From Corallochytrium limacisporum Hawaii (taxonomy: Eukaryota; Protista; Pluriformea), in NCBI GenBank assembly GCA_002811645.1, contig PDIP01000057.1, positions 53,802 to 117,801 of the forward strand: DNA of 64,000 nt, in the 5' to 3' direction. The position numbers and the translations under genes are program-made. Of the stretch, positions 5,106 through 21,329 are shown one piece after another (the stretch's first letter is position 1; each line of letters starts with the position of its first letter). The notes beneath the pieces were generated by a model, which was given only the letters and a program-made list of their open reading frames with translations, ran no database searches and had not been told where the DNA came from.

Positions 5106-6808
5106 GTTGATAGCTAATGTTCCGAATTTTTACTGTGTTTGGAGGTGATATGTCGAAATTCTTTTGTTGCACGCAAACCGTCAAGTACAAGGTTGATACT
5201 GTGTTAGATATCTACCCGAACCGAGGCTTGGATTTCCACTAGCCAATTGTTTGGATGTTATGTTGAAGATCGCAGCTTTGTACAAACAAGAAAATATTGA
5301 AAGAGAGGAAATACCTGCACCATCGACTATTCTGCATGTTTTCACATCATCTAAGCACACAAATTTGTCGTCGTCTTAGGTCCGGACTCCGTGGTGTAAC
5401 TCAAGTTACCCTGTTTGTTCCGTTTAATTCTCTTCCCATCTGCAGCTGCGTGGGTACCTGTGTTCTCGTCACACTGGCAGACTGTTCATGCCGACACAGT
5501 ACCATCCGCATCGGCCACAAACATATTTTCATTTCTGTGCTGGGACCGCACATTGTAGGTAAAGCGCACACGGTTGGTAGTGGAGCTCGATTAATGCAAA
5601 GGAGGAGGCTGCTGAGCTGGGCTGACTGGCTGCTCGACCGCACATCATTCGAAGGCACGAGTGCCTATGTCAAAGACCGGTACAGAAAGTAACGAAGTCA
5701 TACGTGTCTGGAACACTGTGCCAATGCTCTTTCGCCCCCAGGCAGCAGCACAGTCGTGTGTGGAATCTCCAGTTCCTTCACTCGCATGCCAAAACAAGAC
5801 GAAGGTGTGCTTGTGGAACCGTATTGTTATCTCTTTCCCCCTTTGCAAATTCTCTTTCGGTTCCTGTGTTTGGCGGTGCCTCCATACACACACCTCTTGG
5901 CCCTGGAGAGAGGGCTTAGCCCTGAGGTTGCTTTCTTGGCCACACCACCCCCGGAGCGAGAGGGGGGGTGGGGGCGGTGTATGTCGCTCCCCGGGACCCC
6001 AGCTCCTCTCTGGTTGCTGACTTTCGTTTTCATTGTCAGTGGCTTGCAAAACGGACGGGAGGGGCTGTGTGTTTTTGTATTCTCTGGAATATAATGCGAG
6101 GGGGGCGGAGATGATTGTCTTTCTCAAACATGTCAGCGCTGCGGGTCATTTTGTATAGAATTCGGAAGGACATTTTCTGCGAAAGGTGAGAAACGTATGT
6201 CTCTCCACTCTCGGACATTGGTGTGCTCTCCGGTCAGCACTGCTCTCCGGCTAGGAGGTACTGTGAACTGCTCGGGCTTGGCAGAGAGTGGAGACCAGAC
6301 GTCCCCTCCTCTCCTCGTCCACCTCCCCCCACCTGCTTTTATTTGTTTATCATAGATTTAATACTATAGGACACCTTACCACGAGTCAATAGTACGGCCC
6401 CTTCACCGTCCCAAGCGCGCACCCTGCACCCTACAGTGTACACACACTTGCACTCAAATGGTGGCAGGGGCCTTTCACCACTTACCAAGAGCGACTAGGT
6501 TGAGAGAGGTCGCCTATAACTGATGCCTTATCTCAATTCAATTAATTATAATTTTATTGATTAGTACGGGGCGGGTTGCCAACTGGCTCATCCACCACAG
6601 TGTAATTTCTATATTCGTGGGAGGGGGCCTCGTCTGACTGGCTGAGCCCTGTGCTGGGTGGCCTCACGAGCTAGTGTGCGAATACGATGTAGAGGTCGGT
6701 CAGCCTGTTCAGGTACATTTGGATGTCTTCAACAATGAAGTGAGTGAAAGAGATAGATGCCTACTTACTTGATCCACTTCTGATGAGATATTACAAAGCG
6801 ACAAAGAG

Positions 6809-6832
6809 ACATGGTTACCTACATGGTTACCT
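6809..6832. repeat. Perfect 12-bp tandem duplication (ACATGGTTACCT)x2
   Basis: Read directly; ends 15 nt upstream of the 6848 ATG. Confidence 0.9.
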
Positions 6833-6847
6833 GATATCTTAGAAAGG

Positions 6848-7039
6848 ATGGTTGTTGGCGGAGTCTACGGGCGCTCTCCTCCTTTCGTAGCCGTAGCCGT
6901 GGGTATTCTGAGTGGATACTACATCTTCAAGCCAGAAATTGATAAGATCTACACCCGGGCGAAGGTCGAAGAAGAAAAAGCGAGACGGTCTGGAAAATTC
7001 CCACCACCAGGGAACACAGAGGAATCCGAGTCAAAGTGA
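6848..7039 (+). CDS. PIGBOS1-like single-pass microprotein (63 aa)
   Basis: VAVAVGILSGYYIFKP resembles the PIGBOS1 pattern (ATVLGIAGGVYIFQP, recalled), followed by a charged tail. Start context aggATG. Confidence 0.7.
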   Translation: MVVGGVYGRSPPFVAVAVGILSGYYIFKPEIDKIYTRAKVEEEKARRSGKFPPPGNTEESESK

Positions 7040-7091
7040 AGAACAGTTACCGGTATGCAGAGGTATCGCCTGTACATACTATAGCGTAGAA

Positions 7092-9953
7092 ATGGAACCA
7101 CAAATATTGAGAGTATCGATATTGGACAATTTGGGGTCCACGACAGAGTCTGTCGCAATCCAATACTTCTCCAGGATCGATCCCGCCGCTGCCTTGGCGG
7201 CGATGAGACATCAAGGGTTTCGACAAAGTCCTGCGTCATTTCTAGAGCCTTTCCAAATCGGTTCACACACCGTCCAAACTAAGCAGTGTGTCGATTACAA
7301 TGATGTTTTTGAAAGATTAACGTTGGAACAAGATGACTTTACGTTTCTTCCTCTGGAAAATAGCGTATCTGGAGTTTGTGATCCAACGTTGAGGGCACTG
7401 GGAAAGCACTTGGAAAGTATATATCCGTGTGGTGGCATCGAAATTCTTGGGCGAATTGATGGTGTAGCTGAGTATGCCTATTTCATACCAAAGTCGGAGC
7501 CGCGAGGTGGCCCCTTTGAGAGAATTTATTGCCAAGGTGATGATCCAGTAGTAATGTCCCAACCACCAGGCTCCAAGCACGGGGACATGGATCTAATATG
7601 TGTGCGAAACCTAGGAAAATTTTTGAATGATACCTCTGGCGATCATCGTTCATTGCCAAAGAAGAGCATAGTGTTTTGCACCTTTAGGATGGCCCAATTG
7701 TACGACCTTGAGGTCTTGGATGCTGACCATGCACCGAGAGAGCCCCCATTCGATCCAAAGACAGAAAAGGTGACATATATAGCCCTGGGACGGCGCTCTG
7801 TGGAGGCAAAAGGTATGCCCCTGCAGAGCATAGCTCATCCAAGATTGGTTCACCATGACAAGAAACCGATAAATCCTCTGACAGGCCAGTGGCAGCACCA
7901 CTCTGCTATGTACATCATGCTGTGCGAAACGCTTCCAGAAGTCATGACAAAGATCACTCTGAGTTTGGATAGCTATCACCTAAATATCGTGCGCTTGGCA
8001 TGTGTCCCAAATTACGACAAATCCGGATCTCTTGGGGAGGCTATTGACATGTGGACCTGTTTTTTTGAGGTTGACATGATGGTCAGCAGTCCTGTATTCC
8101 AGAAACTTCTTGACGTCATGAACGAATTCAGCGATGGGCATACTGTTGGTCACCTGGTACCGATCATCAGACACTTAACCCACGGAAACCCTTACATTTA
8201 TTTGGAAAGAGCGGCCCTCCAGAGGGCCATAGTGGACCCGAATTCTAAGGGCGATGGTGAAATGATGGACACGGATGCAAAATTGGCTGGCATTCCACCG
8301 GAAGTTTTTGCGCTAATTCTACAGAGATTCAAGCCTTGCCGGCTTCGAGACCTCGCGGATTGTTATAATAGTCTACTGGAAATGTGTAAAGTGAGTTCGC
8401 AGTGGCGACGATCAGTTCTGGATGACTACCCCCTCTGGAAGCATATCATTGACATGGTGTCTTGGTGCAACGGAACTGCTGGCCCTCCGATCCGAGATCT
8501 CACCCGTGGTCACTTTGTGATGTCATCTTCTCGACACGCCTTCATGCGAAGATTCATCGGGGCCTTTAAGAATCTATACAAGGGTCCTGTTTACCAGCGG
8601 GTCTTGAAACACGAAATAGGGGCAGTGAGGTCTCACGGAACAGATGGATTCTTGGTATTCATGCTTCCCTGGGACCAGAATCCTAATCATCCTTGGAGAT
8701 TGCACATGTATGATCCGCGTCATTCACATGATGCTTTCCATTGTAAGTTGAATGTCGCCAGGGGCATTGTACCCCGTTCTGGACCAATTCAGTGCAGACC
8801 TAGAACATCCCGATCAGAACCTTGGGGCTGTGTTGTTCCCATCCATTGGATTAGAGATCCCGGGGATGAAACTGAGATCAAAGGTGTGGTGGTCATCATG
8901 GGAACGGAGTGGGAAGCTACTGGCGACCGTTGGATGAGGGCAGGTGCGATCACGATTGACTCAACGAGTACTCCTGCCCAGGATACTTTTGCTTTGAATC
9001 TGCACAATCACGACACCGTTCATTGGTGTACGGAAGAGCAAATTATCATAATTGCGAGTCCGGCAGGAAACGTCATTGTCGTGCGGTATGAGAACACTGA
9101 CAAACACGCGGGTCTGTTACTGAGATGGGTCCATTCGGTGCCAATCACACTGGGTTTCCCCGTTGCACAAATTGTGGAAAATCGGACACCAAATGAGACT
9201 TTGGAATATGTCTTCGTATCCCAGTATGGCGCTCTGCAGGGTTGGACCTTGCAAGATTTCATCCACTATGACCCGAATGAGGGAGCATCGTGGTCGCCTA
9301 CAGACCGGACAGGCGTCTCACAGATGGACCACATTTCGGTCGATCAGAACCCGGGCCAACCTGGTATTCACTTTCCGAGGGGTTACTTGGCGGGCATCGC
9401 CAAGAATCGTACAGTTCGCTGGTGCGTAGACGGCCATGGACTAAATATGCAACGCCTTGAACCGGACACACTGACACCTGTGGGAGGTGAGTTCAGACCG
9501 GCAGTGAAACCAGAATTGGCAAGGGCTGCATACGCTCTCGAAGTGGTTGGTGATCTCGCGCTCGCGCAGCTTGGGGATGATCTTTTATACGTCTTTCATT
9601 GGCCGTCAGGCAGGCAACTGTACCACATTGCCCCTCGTCAGGGAGGTACTCGAAGAGAACTTGGCGGTGCACGCTGGCAGTTCTGTTCTCCCTATGCGGT
9701 GTACGGTGTGTGGTCTCCAATGGCGAATTCCCGAGTGAGGCCCACTGTCGAAGGCGTCGAGATACATTCCTTCGTCCGTTTTGATGACGATATCAAACTT
9801 ATCCACCCTGCCAATGAGGATTGGAACGTGGAGGACTCCAGCAGTTTTGAAATGTTAGCCGAACACTACAGCAGTCTGACCCACGGAGGTGTATTGGTCA
9901 TGGCCGGGTATGAAGAATTGGATGCGGCCGTATCTAGTGATGAGGAAAGTTGA
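7092..9953 (+). CDS. Degenerate prephenate dehydratase + ACT + F-box + probable beta-propeller fusion protein (953 aa)
   Basis: PDT-like motifs in order (RVSILDNLGSTTESVAIQYF; DVFERL..DFTFLPLENSVSG; AQLYDLEVL), an ACT-like segment (LNIVRLACVP..WTCFFEVD), an F-box (LAGIPPEVFALIL..MCKVSSQWR..LWK) and a beta-rich C-terminal half. First ATG at 7092. Confidence 0.8.
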   Translation: MEPQILRVSILDNLGSTTESVAIQYFSRIDPAAALAAMRHQGFRQSPASFLEPFQIGSHTVQTKQCVDYNDVFERLTLEQDDFTFLPLENSVSGVCDPTLRALGKHLESIYPCGGIEILGRIDGVAEYAYFIPKSEPRGGPFERIYCQGDDPVVMSQPPGSKHGDMDLICVRNLGKFLNDTSGDHRSLPKKSIVFCTFRMAQLYDLEVLDADHAPREPPFDPKTEKVTYIALGRRSVEAKGMPLQSIAHPRLVHHDKKPINPLTGQWQHHSAMYIMLCETLPEVMTKITLSLDSYHLNIVRLACVPNYDKSGSLGEAIDMWTCFFEVDMMVSSPVFQKLLDVMNEFSDGHTVGHLVPIIRHLTHGNPYIYLERAALQRAIVDPNSKGDGEMMDTDAKLAGIPPEVFALILQRFKPCRLRDLADCYNSLLEMCKVSSQWRRSVLDDYPLWKHIIDMVSWCNGTAGPPIRDLTRGHFVMSSSRHAFMRRFIGAFKNLYKGPVYQRVLKHEIGAVRSHGTDGFLVFMLPWDQNPNHPWRLHMYDPRHSHDAFHCKLNVARGIVPRSGPIQCRPRTSRSEPWGCVVPIHWIRDPGDETEIKGVVVIMGTEWEATGDRWMRAGAITIDSTSTPAQDTFALNLHNHDTVHWCTEEQIIIIASPAGNVIVVRYENTDKHAGLLLRWVHSVPITLGFPVAQIVENRTPNETLEYVFVSQYGALQGWTLQDFIHYDPNEGASWSPTDRTGVSQMDHISVDQNPGQPGIHFPRGYLAGIAKNRTVRWCVDGHGLNMQRLEPDTLTPVGGEFRPAVKPELARAAYALEVVGDLALAQLGDDLLYVFHWPSGRQLYHIAPRQGGTRRELGGARWQFCSPYAVYGVWSPMANSRVRPTVEGVEIHSFVRFDDDIKLIHPANEDWNVEDSSSFEMLAEHYSSLTHGGVLVMAGYEELDAAVSSDEES

Positions 9954-10019
9954 GGTTCCCTGGAATTCGATATGTAACACAATCATGAAACTGTTTATTA
10001 TTTTGACTAGAAGATTTAC

Positions 10020-10601
10020 TCAGCCTTGTGTGATTGCGTTGTCGCCCTCCTCTAGCTTCAGATTTGTTTGCAATTCGTAGATAGCAAGTAGCAATAGCTT
10101 GGCCTGATCTCTCCGTTGCTCCAAGGTTTCGTCCATACTCTGGCTTTCACGTTTCAAGGCCTCGATCCGTTCATTGTACTCATTGATCTGTTGGTTTGTC
10201 TGTTCTCGGGATGCTTGCTGTCGAATAACCTTGGCAAGAGCATCGTATTCCTCACGGTGTGCTTTCAGTTGGCGCTCGCGACTCAATGTCTCTTGCAGCT
10301 CCGTGATTTCTTGCTTAGTGCGCTGAATCCCCGACTGAAGTTCTCCCTGTATCGTGTGATAGTGGTCAACTTCACGGTCACGCATCTCCGCGCCAATGGA
10401 CAGCCGTTGCATTGCCCATTCCCCATTGGCCAGCAATGATTTGATGTCACCGAGCACTTCGTCCGCGGGTTTGGTTGCCTCGTTTTCGGCAGTGACTTCC
10501 CCATTTATGTGATCCATGAACATGTTGATAGCGGCATTGACATGTCGATCCTCAGTCAACAGACGCCTGAGAAGGATCTGTTCTTCGCCGAGGTCTGCCA
10601 T
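10020..10601 (-). CDS. THOC7: THO complex subunit 7
   Basis: ILLRRLL N-terminus, REEYDALAKVI signature and RRDQAKLLLLAIYELQ coiled coil. ATG at 10601 (accATG). Confidence 0.9.
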   Translation of the reverse strand: MADLGEEQILLRRLLTEDRHVNAAINMFMDHINGEVTAENEATKPADEVLGDIKSLLANGEWAMQRLSIGAEMRDREVDHYHTIQGELQSGIQRTKQEITELQETLSRERQLKAHREEYDALAKVIRQQASREQTNQQINEYNERIEALKRESQSMDETLEQRRDQAKLLLLAIYELQTNLKLEEGDNAITQG

Positions 10602-11263
10602 GGTGCATAAATATAGACGTTTACATTGTCCTCCAACTTCCCGCTTTCTGCCGACGCGTTTCTCGGCCTCCGCCAATGCTTTGCTCCATACGTAAACATT
10701 AGTCGTCAACTCATGCACATTGAAATACCACCAGTCAATCCTAAACCGCGCAAACCCCTACCGATAAAACACTGCATAATGCTATTGAATGCATACTCTT
10801 GCTTTTCGTATACACAAAGGACGTCCGTACCAGCATAACCTGCCAGCCAAGGATTTTGCACGGCCGTGCACTAAGGAAGGGGTGGCGGCTGAGAGTGGTG
10901 GGGGAGAAAGGCTGCTGTTTGGGAAGTAGAGTGAGGTCACATGGACCCGCACGGGGCCAAAACTGGACTTGCCGGCACAGCCCACACTGACCGACTGAGA
11001 TATCCCAGTGAAGGCCATTCAAGGTCTTGGGGAACAATTAGAGTTTTATCAGAACGCGATGGTTTGTGAGAAGCTTGTTATTTCTCGAGGCCCTGGATAA
11101 CTAGGTATTTACAGACCGTTCAGGCGACGATGTCAAGATGCGATGGTCTTGTCCTACAAACTGTGAGTAGAATCGACCGTGACAAGAAAGGTATAAGTAC
11201 ATTGGCATGTGTTGAATAAGACGTTAAAGAATTTGAATTCTGAAAAGAGAATACATTAACATA

Positions 11264-12688
11264 ATGTTGAGGCTAGGGCACCGCATGAGCAGGCGGTCAA
11301 CTATGGCGCGCCCGGTGTTGGTGCGGGTGTGCCAATATGGTACAGAGGCATCTGCAGACACTAGTAGGCCAAACAAACTCTCGCAGACGTTGGAGAAGTC
11401 TGCTCATGAGGTCTCGCCGTCGGATTTGGGAAAGTTTTTTTGTCTATCTGAAAAAGCTCAACTAGTAACGGGTGATCTCGCCAACAAATGGACCCGTAAA
11501 CTTTTCAAGATGACAGTGGATCAGGGAGTTATGGTCCGAAAGCCTGCCGTAGATGTCATCGCTGCCATGAACACATTACGCGAAATTCCGAGAGACCAAC
11601 CATTCTGGCATGTGCCACATCTGCATTTCGTACCGAAGGCCCCGGCCTCTCGGGGGGTTGGCCGTACTTTTGCGTGGTATCACACCGTGCAGGCTGCGCT
11701 GGACAGCGGATGGGTCGTAGTGGCGGTACCCCGCGCCCATCGTTGGACCGAGCGGACGTTCAAGGTCCGTCGAAGTCGGCGATTCCCTGGACTATTCGAT
11801 CAACCAATGGAGACCAATGAATTTTTGACCAGATTCAAAGCCATGAATTCTGAGTTCTGTGACGAGGTGCAGGTAACGGCCGATCTGTTTGAGGGTACTG
11901 AAGGGGCGAAGCCTGCCGTGCTGGACAAAGACAGCATGAGCCTCAGGGAGTTCATAGACGTGTGCATAAACACTACAAACGACGTGGAGGAGCAGCCAAA
12001 TCTGTTCGATGCGCTGCACGCCACATTTGAAATTCTGCGGTCTCGATGCAACGACCGAAACGTGGCGATTTTGGTGGACGGTATCAGCGCATTTGACGTG
12101 GAGCAGAGTCTTGTTCACGATATGGACCAGCTTGTACCCGTTCCTCCCAGCTCTCTGACGCTCGTGCGTCACACCATGTCTCTGGCACATGGGTTGGAGA
12201 ACTCTCAGGGTCGACGGTGCCTGATATCCACGACTACCGAGGAGGGCGTGGAACTGAACTTTGAGAACAAGGAATGGGTCCGGCAGACTGTGGCTGAAGG
12301 CTCTACTATTGATCTCAAGGAATATTTGGAGCATGTGAAGACTATTGCGGCCTCTGAACCAGCCGTGAATTCACGGGCACATGCAATCGTTCGTGAGGCC
12401 GAAAAGAAGGGAGCTGAGCCTCACCAGATGCAGCAGCTCCTGGCTGCCCTGAAGGCGGAGGATATGGCGCTTTGGAAGAGCTTAAATGCACAGAATGTCT
12501 TGCAGCGGTCTTTGACCGTTGTAGAGGTGCCGGTCTACACAGAGGAAGAGCTGATAAACATGCTCAAGCACTATTCTGACCTCGGAATGCTGTTCAATCG
12601 TAAGATCGAGCCTAAGTTTGTGCAACTCATGCATATGACAACACAGGGTAGTCCGAAGGAGGTCACAAAGTATATCCTACACATTTAG
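11264..12688 (+). CDS. DAP3: Mitochondrial ribosomal protein mS29 (DAP3/Rsm23)
   Basis: Presequence, GVMVRKPAVDVI, a P-loop-like RGVGRT followed by GWVVVAVP, FDQP..FLTRFKAMN, Walker B ILVDG, and the C-terminal VPVYTEEE..GSPKE. Confidence 0.85.
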   Translation: MLRLGHRMSRRSTMARPVLVRVCQYGTEASADTSRPNKLSQTLEKSAHEVSPSDLGKFFCLSEKAQLVTGDLANKWTRKLFKMTVDQGVMVRKPAVDVIAAMNTLREIPRDQPFWHVPHLHFVPKAPASRGVGRTFAWYHTVQAALDSGWVVVAVPRAHRWTERTFKVRRSRRFPGLFDQPMETNEFLTRFKAMNSEFCDEVQVTADLFEGTEGAKPAVLDKDSMSLREFIDVCINTTNDVEEQPNLFDALHATFEILRSRCNDRNVAILVDGISAFDVEQSLVHDMDQLVPVPPSSLTLVRHTMSLAHGLENSQGRRCLISTTTEEGVELNFENKEWVRQTVAEGSTIDLKEYLEHVKTIAASEPAVNSRAHAIVREAEKKGAEPHQMQQLLAALKAEDMALWKSLNAQNVLQRSLTVVEVPVYTEEELINMLKHYSDLGMLFNRKIEPKFVQLMHMTTQGSPKEVTKYILHI

Positions 12689-19916: not shown

Positions 19917-21329
19917 ATGGTCAGCGTCAGCAACCGATCGTTAGTTAGTCTCACTAGCGGACCAGCGCTAGAAAAAAATACACGCTATGGTAGCATTGCA
20001 CAGTCGTATACGCATGTTGCAACCGAGTCGCACAGTGAAATCGGCGCCTGGGCTAAACTTGGCGGAGATGTGGTCATGTATATCCTTTCTTTTGTTGCTA
20101 GCGCAGAAGATCTATTGGAAATGGCACAGACTTCACGGGTACTTAACTACATTTGCCGGGAGCCGGAGCTATGGTACCAGCTCTGTAAGCGGTCTCATTG
20201 TCCACAGCTAGTAAAGAAGGAGCACGATGTCGACTGGCGACTCATGGTCATCGCTCTGAGCACCAAGATGCCAAAGACGCTTCTCACCCTATCACCTTCT
20301 GTCATGTTTCCCATTAGCACTGGTCGCGTGTATGCGGACATGCACTCAAGCAAACGACTAATGAATGTGGCTATGAAGCTGCGCGACTTCGGTTACTATG
20401 AAAAGAGTGAATATGTCTTCCACCGCGCCCTGGAGGCTGCCATCGAAGAGTTCGGACCGCAGAGTGAGGCTGTCGGGGATGCTGTGTACTTCGTGAGCTT
20501 GAGCAAGGGAAACCAGGGCAAGAATATTGGACTAACTGGTACTCGGGAACTGCGCCGTTTGGCAATCGACATTTACCAGAGGGTAATTGGTGAGCTCAAT
20601 GCAAAGGTTGCACTTGCAATCTATTCGTTGGCCGATGTCTATTTCGTGGAGGGTAATTATGAAAAGGCAGAACCTCTGTATTGGAAGGCGCTGAACCTGC
20701 GTCTTGAGGTCTGTCCGGAGGACGAAGAAGTCCTGGCTGAATCGTACTCGGGCCTCGGTCTAATCTACGACGCCAAACGGGACTATGACCACGCGGAGGA
20801 ATACTACCGAAAGAGTCTTGAGATGAGAGAGCGCACTCTCGGCAAGGATCATCCTAAGGTAGCACGTGTATGTGTTAATCTAGGTGCCATGTACAAGTCC
20901 AAGGGCATGCTGGACAAGACAATTGAATTGTATGAGAGGGCTCTGGCCATCAGGCAAAAGCACCTGGGCACTTCGCATCCGTACACCAAGCGCATCTATG
21001 TTATTCTGAACGACACCAAACGGCGATTTACTGTTCAGCAAGAAACCTTACGGCAACAACGTATGCAAGAAGAAGATGAAAACAGAGTGCAGCAGGCACG
21101 CATGGAAATGATGCGCCAGGAGGCATTGAGCAGTGGGCATCAGCAGGAGGATGATGTCGACGATGACCATGCAGCCGCTACCGCCACAGAGGACTCGTCA
21201 GCTGATAGCCTGCAAATCCATACGAGTCGGAGCCAGAGTCAATATGTGGGACCCACGAGCAGCGAGCCCTTAGATTCTTCAGTTGTTGGGGCATCGTTCA
21301 GCGTCGGGGATGTGACTCGTATCGGATGA
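19917..21329 (+). CDS. F-box protein with kinesin-light-chain-type TPR repeats
   Basis: F-box (WAKLGGDVVMYILSFV..LLEMAQTSR..LWYQLC) and 42-aa TPRs (GNYEKAEPLYWKAL, AEEYYRKSLEMRERTLGKDHP, YERALAIRQKHLGTSHP). Confidence 0.9.
   Translation: MVSVSNRSLVSLTSGPALEKNTRYGSIAQSYTHVATESHSEIGAWAKLGGDVVMYILSFVASAEDLLEMAQTSRVLNYICREPELWYQLCKRSHCPQLVKKEHDVDWRLMVIALSTKMPKTLLTLSPSVMFPISTGRVYADMHSSKRLMNVAMKLRDFGYYEKSEYVFHRALEAAIEEFGPQSEAVGDAVYFVSLSKGNQGKNIGLTGTRELRRLAIDIYQRVIGELNAKVALAIYSLADVYFVEGNYEKAEPLYWKALNLRLEVCPEDEEVLAESYSGLGLIYDAKRDYDHAEEYYRKSLEMRERTLGKDHPKVARVCVNLGAMYKSKGMLDKTIELYERALAIRQKHLGTSHPYTKRIYVILNDTKRRFTVQQETLRQQRMQEEDENRVQQARMEMMRQEALSSGHQQEDDVDDDHAAATATEDSSADSLQIHTSRSQSQYVGPTSSEPLDSSVVGASFSVGDVTRIG

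Follow-up and report, generated by a model that had tools for sequence, protein, structure and literature searches.

The window analyzed here is a stretch of 64,000 nucleotides (nt) from Corallochytrium limacisporum Hawaii (contig PDIP01000057.1, positions 53,802 to 117,801), a single-celled holozoan whose genome is compact and intron-poor. It belongs to contig C239 of the 24.1-Mb, 286-contig assembly. The forward strand carries a single-exon open reading frame (ORF) of 953 amino acids (aa) with three parts: an N-terminal module that resembles a prephenate dehydratase (PDT) followed by an ACT domain, an F-box, and a large C-terminal domain. The product is referred to below as the PDT-F-box protein, and the coordinates of all features are collected in Table 1. 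A preliminary description of this DNA had proposed that the ORF joins a dead PDT/ACT enzyme to an F-box and a WD40-like propeller, and that it acts as a metabolite-gated receptor of an SCF (Skp1-cullin-F-box) ubiquitin ligase.

The ORF was indeed found to be uninterrupted. Its frame is open over 6912-9953, with 7092 as the position of the first in-frame ATG. A codon-usage log-likelihood, for which nine further ORFs of the window served as training set, preferred this frame in almost all 240-nt windows between 6972 and 9950, the first 199 codons included. The gene is also covered by assembled contigs from two public runs of two different studies, which we guess to be RNA. The first contig (X1) spans 6736-9000 and shows 0 differences from the assembly. 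The second (X2) spans 6720-10622 and shows 24 substitutions, with no indel or joint. When compared over 6720-11400, X2 and the assembly differed at 25 substitution sites and by one 1-nt deletion (∼0.6% over the main contig); X2 represents a distinct strain or allele, which can be used for genome-wide selection tests. As neither run covered the flanking intergenic DNA at 6000-6720 and 10706-11067, the runs have the appearance of transcriptome data. No stop, frameshift or intron was present between the PDT/ACT half and the F-box half in either strain. Two separate genes, or an artefact of the assembly, could be ruled out as explanations of the architecture, because contigs from two studies cross the junctions without an indel.

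Table 1. Coordinates of the features of the PDT-F-box locus and of related genes; positions refer to the window unless another locus is named.
Feature	Position	Strand	Description and basis
PDT-F-box coding sequence	7092..9953	+	953 aa plus stop, single exon; ORF list, codon usage, contigs X1/X2
Degenerate PDT catalytic region, residues 1-235	7092..7796	+	Pfam PDT, hhalign, HMM null, Smith-Waterman, ESM features
ENS motif, E89 N90 S91	7356..7364	+	Alignment A4; N invariant across PDTs
D180-T181, invariant DT of PDTs	7629..7634	+	A4 invariant columns; Q157 kept too
VTY, V227-T228-Y229, at the catalytic TRF position	7770..7778	+	MAFFT and hhalign agree; translation checked
ACT-like domain, residues 270-358	7899..8165	+	BLASTP, Smith-Waterman vs own PDT, common insert
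F-box, residues 398-455	8283..8456	+	∼8-aa insertion between helices 1 and 2; Pfam F-box-like, alignment, predicted Skp1 docking
C-terminal domain, 489 aa	8484..9950	+	Presumed substrate-binding part, possibly a degenerate beta-propeller; ESM-feature lead; AF2 single-sequence pLDDT 30
PIGBOS1-like ORF, 63 aa	6848..7039	+	PF23670, 35.4 bits vs cut-off 27; outside the PDT-F-box protein
THOC7, convergent neighbour	10020-10718	-
PDT plus ACT gene (L001/P0002)	L001:1156-2100 (C285)	-	ESRP kept; TKY for TRF; eukaryote-type ACT-loop insert
PDT gene without ACT domain (L002)	L002:1144-2070 (C184)	-	PDT part only; ANS for ENS, TLM for TRF

The relationship of the N-terminus to PDTs was evaluated by profile and pairwise comparisons. 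The Pfam PDT model (PF00800) matched residues 58-106 with 20.8 bits (E 4e-4), below its cut-off of 25.2 and over profile positions 20-68 only, and the NCBIfam PDT equivalogs gave ∼13 bits and did not reach their cut-offs of 219 and 577. A profile alignment by hhalign against 34 diverse PDTs (alignment A1) was far more extensive. It placed 232 colinear columns between residues 59 and 349, comprising both PDT lobes, and its path ran through the ENS region, the AAxxYGLxIL helix, the TRF strand and the ACT domain. The score was 42.7, while the maximum among 163 shuffled sequences was 26.7 over 37 columns and the reversed sequence gave 15.4. The corresponding E-value was 2.2e-4, or 4.5e-5 with a pre-built profile, at a probability of 45-69%. 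A hidden Markov model (HMM) built from the same alignment scored the N-terminus with 13.9 bits, versus at most 5.8 bits in 2000 shuffles. The order of PDT motifs that had been noted from the sequence is therefore borne out as a colinear relationship beyond chance. In ESM feature space, the ten best named matches of residues 1-390 were all PDT clusters (0.87). In Smith-Waterman alignment with the organism's own PDT, the catalytic part alone scored 50, a value that was reached in 3 of 1500 shuffles; with other PDTs it scored up to 77. It contains insertions at residues ∼20-58, 127-138 and 158-169 that are lineage-specific.

The ACT-like unit, which the preliminary description had placed at ∼7900-8162, proved to be real. 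Residues 260-360 aligned to the organism's own PDT with a Smith-Waterman score of 68, compared with a mean of 23.8 ± 4.3 and a maximum of 47 in 3000 shuffles, and BLASTP retrieved the same relationship with an E-value of 2e-5. The generic Pfam ACT model did not match this domain; the genuine PDT of the organism itself reached only 23.6 bits with that model. Based on these sequence comparisons, residues 1-360 are very probably of PDT and ACT ancestry.

Structure prediction was of limited use for this part of the protein. When AlphaFold2 (AF2) was run without an alignment, the N-terminus had a predicted local distance difference test (pLDDT) value of 30.6 and the model was unusable. A run on a PDT-family alignment (A4) gave a pLDDT of 61.8, with high values for residues 1-30 and 50-90, moderate values for the ACT domain and values of ∼30 for residues 150-190. 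The top Foldseek matches of this second model were the PDT structures 3luy, 3mwb, 2qmx and 6vh5 and the PDT-fold acylase GqqA. As the fold is dictated by the alignment, this result is circular and was not counted as independent evidence.

The state of the catalytic and ligand-binding motifs was determined from the same alignments, and the positions previously given for ENS, VTY and ACVP were exact. The PDT alignment has 17 invariant columns, and eight of them are kept (G15, N90 of ENS, G94, I110, Q157, D180-T181 and P306). The TRF triad, which is reported to be crucial for binding of the substrate and for catalysis in PDTs (PMC10845154, citing Zhang 2000), is represented by VTY, and a shift of the alignment by one residue would recover the T and not the R. 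The Phe-binding ACT motifs of PDTs, GALV/GALF and ESRP (PMC10845154, citing Pohnert 1999 and Tan 2008), are altered as well: PGALF is replaced by PEVMT, and ESRP by ACVP (7998-8009), in which the P is kept. Since TRF, GALF and ESRP have all changed, both catalysis and the canonical feedback binding of Phe appear unlikely. The PDT part is likely a dead enzyme, as had been suspected from the loss of the TRF triad in a PDT- and ACT-derived N-terminus. The ENS, Q and DT residues that are kept would still allow some ligand to occupy the cleft, and they may equally be structural.

The genome contains two further, intact genes that pass the PF00800 threshold, which answers whether a separate PDT exists (P0002 and L002 in Table 1). 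With two such genes present, the PDT-F-box protein would be dispensable for phenylalanine synthesis. The second of them, L002, may not be a standard PDT. It lies between two ORFs that, as judged by eye, resemble serine hydroxymethyltransferase and tryptophan-2,3-dioxygenase. The PDT-F-box protein itself has no paralogue in the genome. Its ACT part scores 68 with P0002, whereas none of 119 other PDTs scored above 41 (median 30). Further, both proteins have an insert of ∼8 residues C-terminal to the ESRP position (SLGEAIDMW and SVSSATHIW) that is not found in bacterial sequences and differs in plant sequences. Because the ACT part is closest to P0002 and has this insert in common with it, the module is most simply explained by duplication of the PDT-ACT gene of the organism itself within the lineage, followed by fusion and rapid divergence.

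The F-box had been placed at ∼8283-8450, and a consensus of the type LPxE...CxxW...LW is present in this region. The Pfam F-box-like models (PF12937 / PF00646) gave 20.6 bits (E 4e-4) and did not reach the cut-off of 24.3; in a genome-wide F-box scan the locus had 22.3 bits and ranked 37th of 38. The segment IPPEVFALIL...CKVSSQWRRSVLDDYPLW could be aligned with 24 F-boxes of the same genome and retains the near-invariant P and W. Skp1 is present in the genome in canonical form (L005:1489-1980), as are four full cullins. When residues 388-478 were docked on this Skp1 by structure prediction, the score was 0.71, versus 0.15 for the best of three controls, although this may reflect memory of solved complexes. 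Of 78 solved complexes, 51 reached this mark, as did 2 of 108 mismatched pairs. Individual runs had at least 76% of their contacts in common, the pLDDT of the partner was at least 69, and the predicted interface comprised Skp1 residues 101-160, the C-terminal helices that form the canonical F-box site. The F-box is thus predicted to dock on the Skp1 of the organism. As many Skp1/F-box complexes have already been solved, the result is to be read as likeness to such complexes and not as binding.

The C-terminal domain (residues 465-953) had no sequence match in Pfam, NCBIfam or the PDB at E≤10. WD40, Kelch and other propeller repeats were looked for by Pfam, self-alignment and PDB searches and none were found; the best internal self-alignment scored 39, compared with 41.7 ± 6.5 for shuffles. 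The Pfam model of the pof12 propeller (PF25499) matched neither the protein nor the genome. The WD40-like blades that had been read from the sequence could thus not be recovered. The sole indication of a propeller came from ESM features, in which residues 465-953 were nearest to pof12-type, FBXW12, STERILE APETALA and DCAF17 propellers (0.88). We regard this as a fair lead because the F-box had been left out of the query, and we lean slightly towards a C-terminus that is a degenerate E3-receptor propeller. Of the earlier domain assignments, Pfam returned PDT and F-box below threshold, and neither ACT nor WD40.

Searches with the whole protein retrieved no homologue other than the protein itself (P0001, its public gene call) among 1.84e9 representatives (HMMER) or 5.8e9 protein clusters including EukProt, and the sequence search of the PDB returned noise only. 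The gene is accordingly confined to this one species in the sets searched. The ORF differs between the two strains by 13 nonsynonymous changes (2215 sites) and 5 synonymous ones (644 sites), which corresponds to a ratio of nonsynonymous to synonymous polymorphism (pN/pS) of ∼0.76, and the ratio is alike in all three parts. The neighbouring THOC7 has 1 nonsynonymous and 4 synonymous changes in the same strain pair. The strain comparison argues against strong constraint, with numbers that are small. The gene does not appear to be dead, because a frame of 953 codons has outlived divergence to ∼18-20% identity and its codon usage is gene-like. Fast birth-and-death evolution is a familiar trait of lineage-specific F-box genes, and the PDT-F-box gene seems to evolve fast in the way that many of these do.

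Upstream of the gene, the PIGBOS1-like ORF, which by its PF23670 score encodes a genuine microprotein of this kind, is present on the same assembled contigs (which start at 6720 and 6736), and its stop codon lies 52 nt before the ATG of the PDT-F-box ORF. The two could be encoded by a bicistronic mRNA or by overlapping transcripts. Translation of the main ORF from an own promoter within 7040-7091 and translation by reinitiation are both compatible with the data. Downstream, the stop codons of the PDT-F-box gene and of THOC7 are only 66 nt apart (9953-10020), and contig X2 (6720-10622) crosses both. As this one contig runs through both genes, their 3′ untranslated regions probably overlap. The other neighbours in the window are ordinary eukaryotic genes: mitoribosomal DAP3/mS29, Arv1, an F-box-TPR protein, ARID, a kinase, a DENN protein and SepSecS. 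The F-box-TPR protein is the second F-box protein of the window (19917-21329, forward strand); its F-box-like domain (29.8 bits, above the cut-off) is joined to TPR_12 / nephrocystin-3-type TPR repeats.

Taken together, the PDT-F-box protein is probably a Corallochytrium-specific SCF substrate receptor with a pseudo-PDT/ACT module. The F-box would dock on Skp1-Cul1 and the 489-aa C-terminal domain, perhaps a degenerate propeller, would recruit substrates. The pseudo-PDT/ACT module would no longer sense phenylalanine. PDTs dimerise or tetramerise via their ACT and catalytic domains, and for this reason the module may most likely serve as an oligomerisation or regulatory scaffold, or else as a second protein-binding surface. 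Of the receptor that was first proposed, the functional-looking F-box, which shares its ORF and contig with the PDT/ACT part, and the predicted Skp1 docking are retained, and the WD40 propeller is not.

Several points weigh against this interpretation. Neither the PDT nor the F-box match reaches its curated Pfam cut-off, and the Skp1 score may stem from the memory of the model for solved Skp1/F-box complexes. The only usable three-dimensional model of the N-terminus was built from the alignment and is circular, and its PDTb lobe (residues 150-190) has a pLDDT of ∼30. The RNA nature of the run contigs is a guess, and contigs cannot reveal the ends of transcripts. The PIGBOS1-like ORF and several upstream AUGs are located on the same contig, so that translation of residues 1-199 is unproven, and the public gene call P0001 (754 aa) begins at residue 200; the strongest PDT signal (residues 59-101) lies in the same frame upstream of that start. 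The pN/pS of ∼0.76 (13:5) would fit near-neutral drift, and the dimerisation role is purely our inference.

Alternatively, the gene could be a young chimera near neutral drift, in which a duplicated PDT was joined by chance to an F-box gene and is transcribed, and is unselected or being lost. The ratio of 13:5 in the face of 1:4 for THOC7, its evenness over all three parts, the orphan status in all databases searched, the erosion of the functional motifs and a main ATG that is preceded by an upstream ORF and by several upstream AUGs would all agree with this. However, keeping 953 codons open while the PDT part fell to ∼18-20% identity needs long-term selection against stops, the codon usage is gene-like throughout, and neither the F-box consensus nor the predicted Skp1 interface has been lost. 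Further, 18 substitutions are too few to tell an omega of 0.76 from one of ∼0.4. A drifting chimera is therefore considered unlikely. It is very improbable that the PDT/ACT likeness is spurious and that an ordinary F-box protein carries an unrelated domain at its N-terminus. This would agree with the absence of any match above a curated cut-off, the hhalign probability of only 45-69%, the lack of a match to the Pfam ACT model and the failure of the unbiased AF2 run to give a usable fold, but several sequence-based tests, which have inputs in common, agree colinearly over two domains and exceed their empirical nulls by wide margins, and the specific affinity to the ACT domain of the own PDT, together with the common insert, would be left unexplained.

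The preliminary description had favoured a sensor. On this reading, the pseudo-PDT/ACT module would have kept a small-molecule ligand and would use it to gate ubiquitination by the SCF complex, as LOV does in ZTL/FKF1 and hemerythrin in FBXL5; the ligand could be an aromatic amino acid, prephenate or arogenate, or a new one. Sensor domains N-terminal to an F-box have known precedents, the core of the ACT fold is kept, and the cleft residues ENS, Q157 and D180-T181, among the 8 of 17 invariant columns, were retained amid much change. The substrate-binding Arg and both Phe-contact motifs are lost, however (TRF to VTY, GALF to EVMT and ESRP to ACVP), constraint between the strains is weak, the kept cleft residues are possibly structural, and with no orthologue there is no conservation to back a pocket. 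Metabolite gating thus has to be regarded as rather improbable, and its more specific form, in which a metabolite in the cleft of ENS, Q157 and D180-T181 would switch SCF dimerisation or substrate recruitment, as slightly more doubtful still.

No description of a PDT and F-box architecture, or of such an F-box protein from Corallochytrium, was found in the literature, in agreement with the novelty that had been presumed. F-box receptors that carry a sensor domain, or one of enzyme origin, on their N-terminal side are already known, and it is the PDT/ACT version that is new. A matching layout is offered by the SCF receptors ZEITLUPE, FKF1 and LKP2, which also combine an N-terminal small-molecule-binding domain derived from an enzyme or sensor, an F-box and a large C-terminal presumed substrate domain. 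Unlike in these LOV-F-box-Kelch proteins, the N-terminal module here is PDT and ACT and not LOV/PAS and has no evident cofactor or ligand site, the C-terminus is not a recognisable Kelch domain, and there is no sequence relationship. The iron sensor FBXL5 (hemerythrin-F-box-LRR), with its ligand-binding domain N-terminal to the F-box, is a conceptual precedent for metabolite gating, but its ligand residues are conserved and its orthologues widespread, whereas the PDT-F-box protein has lost its ligand motifs and is an orphan. Fbw7, Cdc4 and beta-TrCP, which have an oligomerisation D domain directly N-terminal to the F-box and a propeller C-terminal to it, serve as the model for a scaffold role. 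Their D domain is short and helical and their WD40 repeats are easily detected, in contrast to the ∼360-aa pseudoenzyme found here and a C-terminus in which no WD40 was detected.

With respect to the enzymes, the PDTa-PDTb-ACT order of PDTs with an ACT domain (the C-terminal part of PheA, Pha2 and the plant arogenate dehydratases; PDB 2qmx, 2qmw, 3mwb and 6vh5) is colinear in the PDT-F-box protein, which differs from them by its changed TRF, GALF and ESRP motifs, its large insertions and the fusion to an F-box. The quorum-quenching acylase GqqA (PDB 7alz and 7am0) is a case in which the PDT/ACT scaffold was reused outside phenylalanine synthesis; unlike the protein described here, it is still an enzyme and a clear member of the PDT family (2.4e-66 to the PDT profile) and is not fused to an F-box. 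The nearest neighbours of the C-terminus by ESM features, Pof12-type F-box propellers (PF25499), FBXW12 and DCAF17, are E3-receptor propellers with weak repeat signatures, and as the PF25499 HMM gave no match the tie to the Pof12 type is a lead only.

If functional, the PDT-F-box protein would be a clear case of a metabolic enzyme that was copied, lost its activity and became part of the ubiquitin system. The organism, a close unicellular relative of animals, differs from them in that it can still synthesise phenylalanine. PDT/ACT would then join the short list of modules that occur N-terminal to F-boxes, which includes LOV, hemerythrin and the D domain. Should the cleft bind a ligand after all, the protein would represent a ubiquitin-ligase receptor that is gated by a metabolite and derives from a biosynthetic enzyme. 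As the protein is known from a single species, has lost its ligand motifs and is under weak constraint, it would inform on the rapid birth of F-box receptors more than on conserved sensing.

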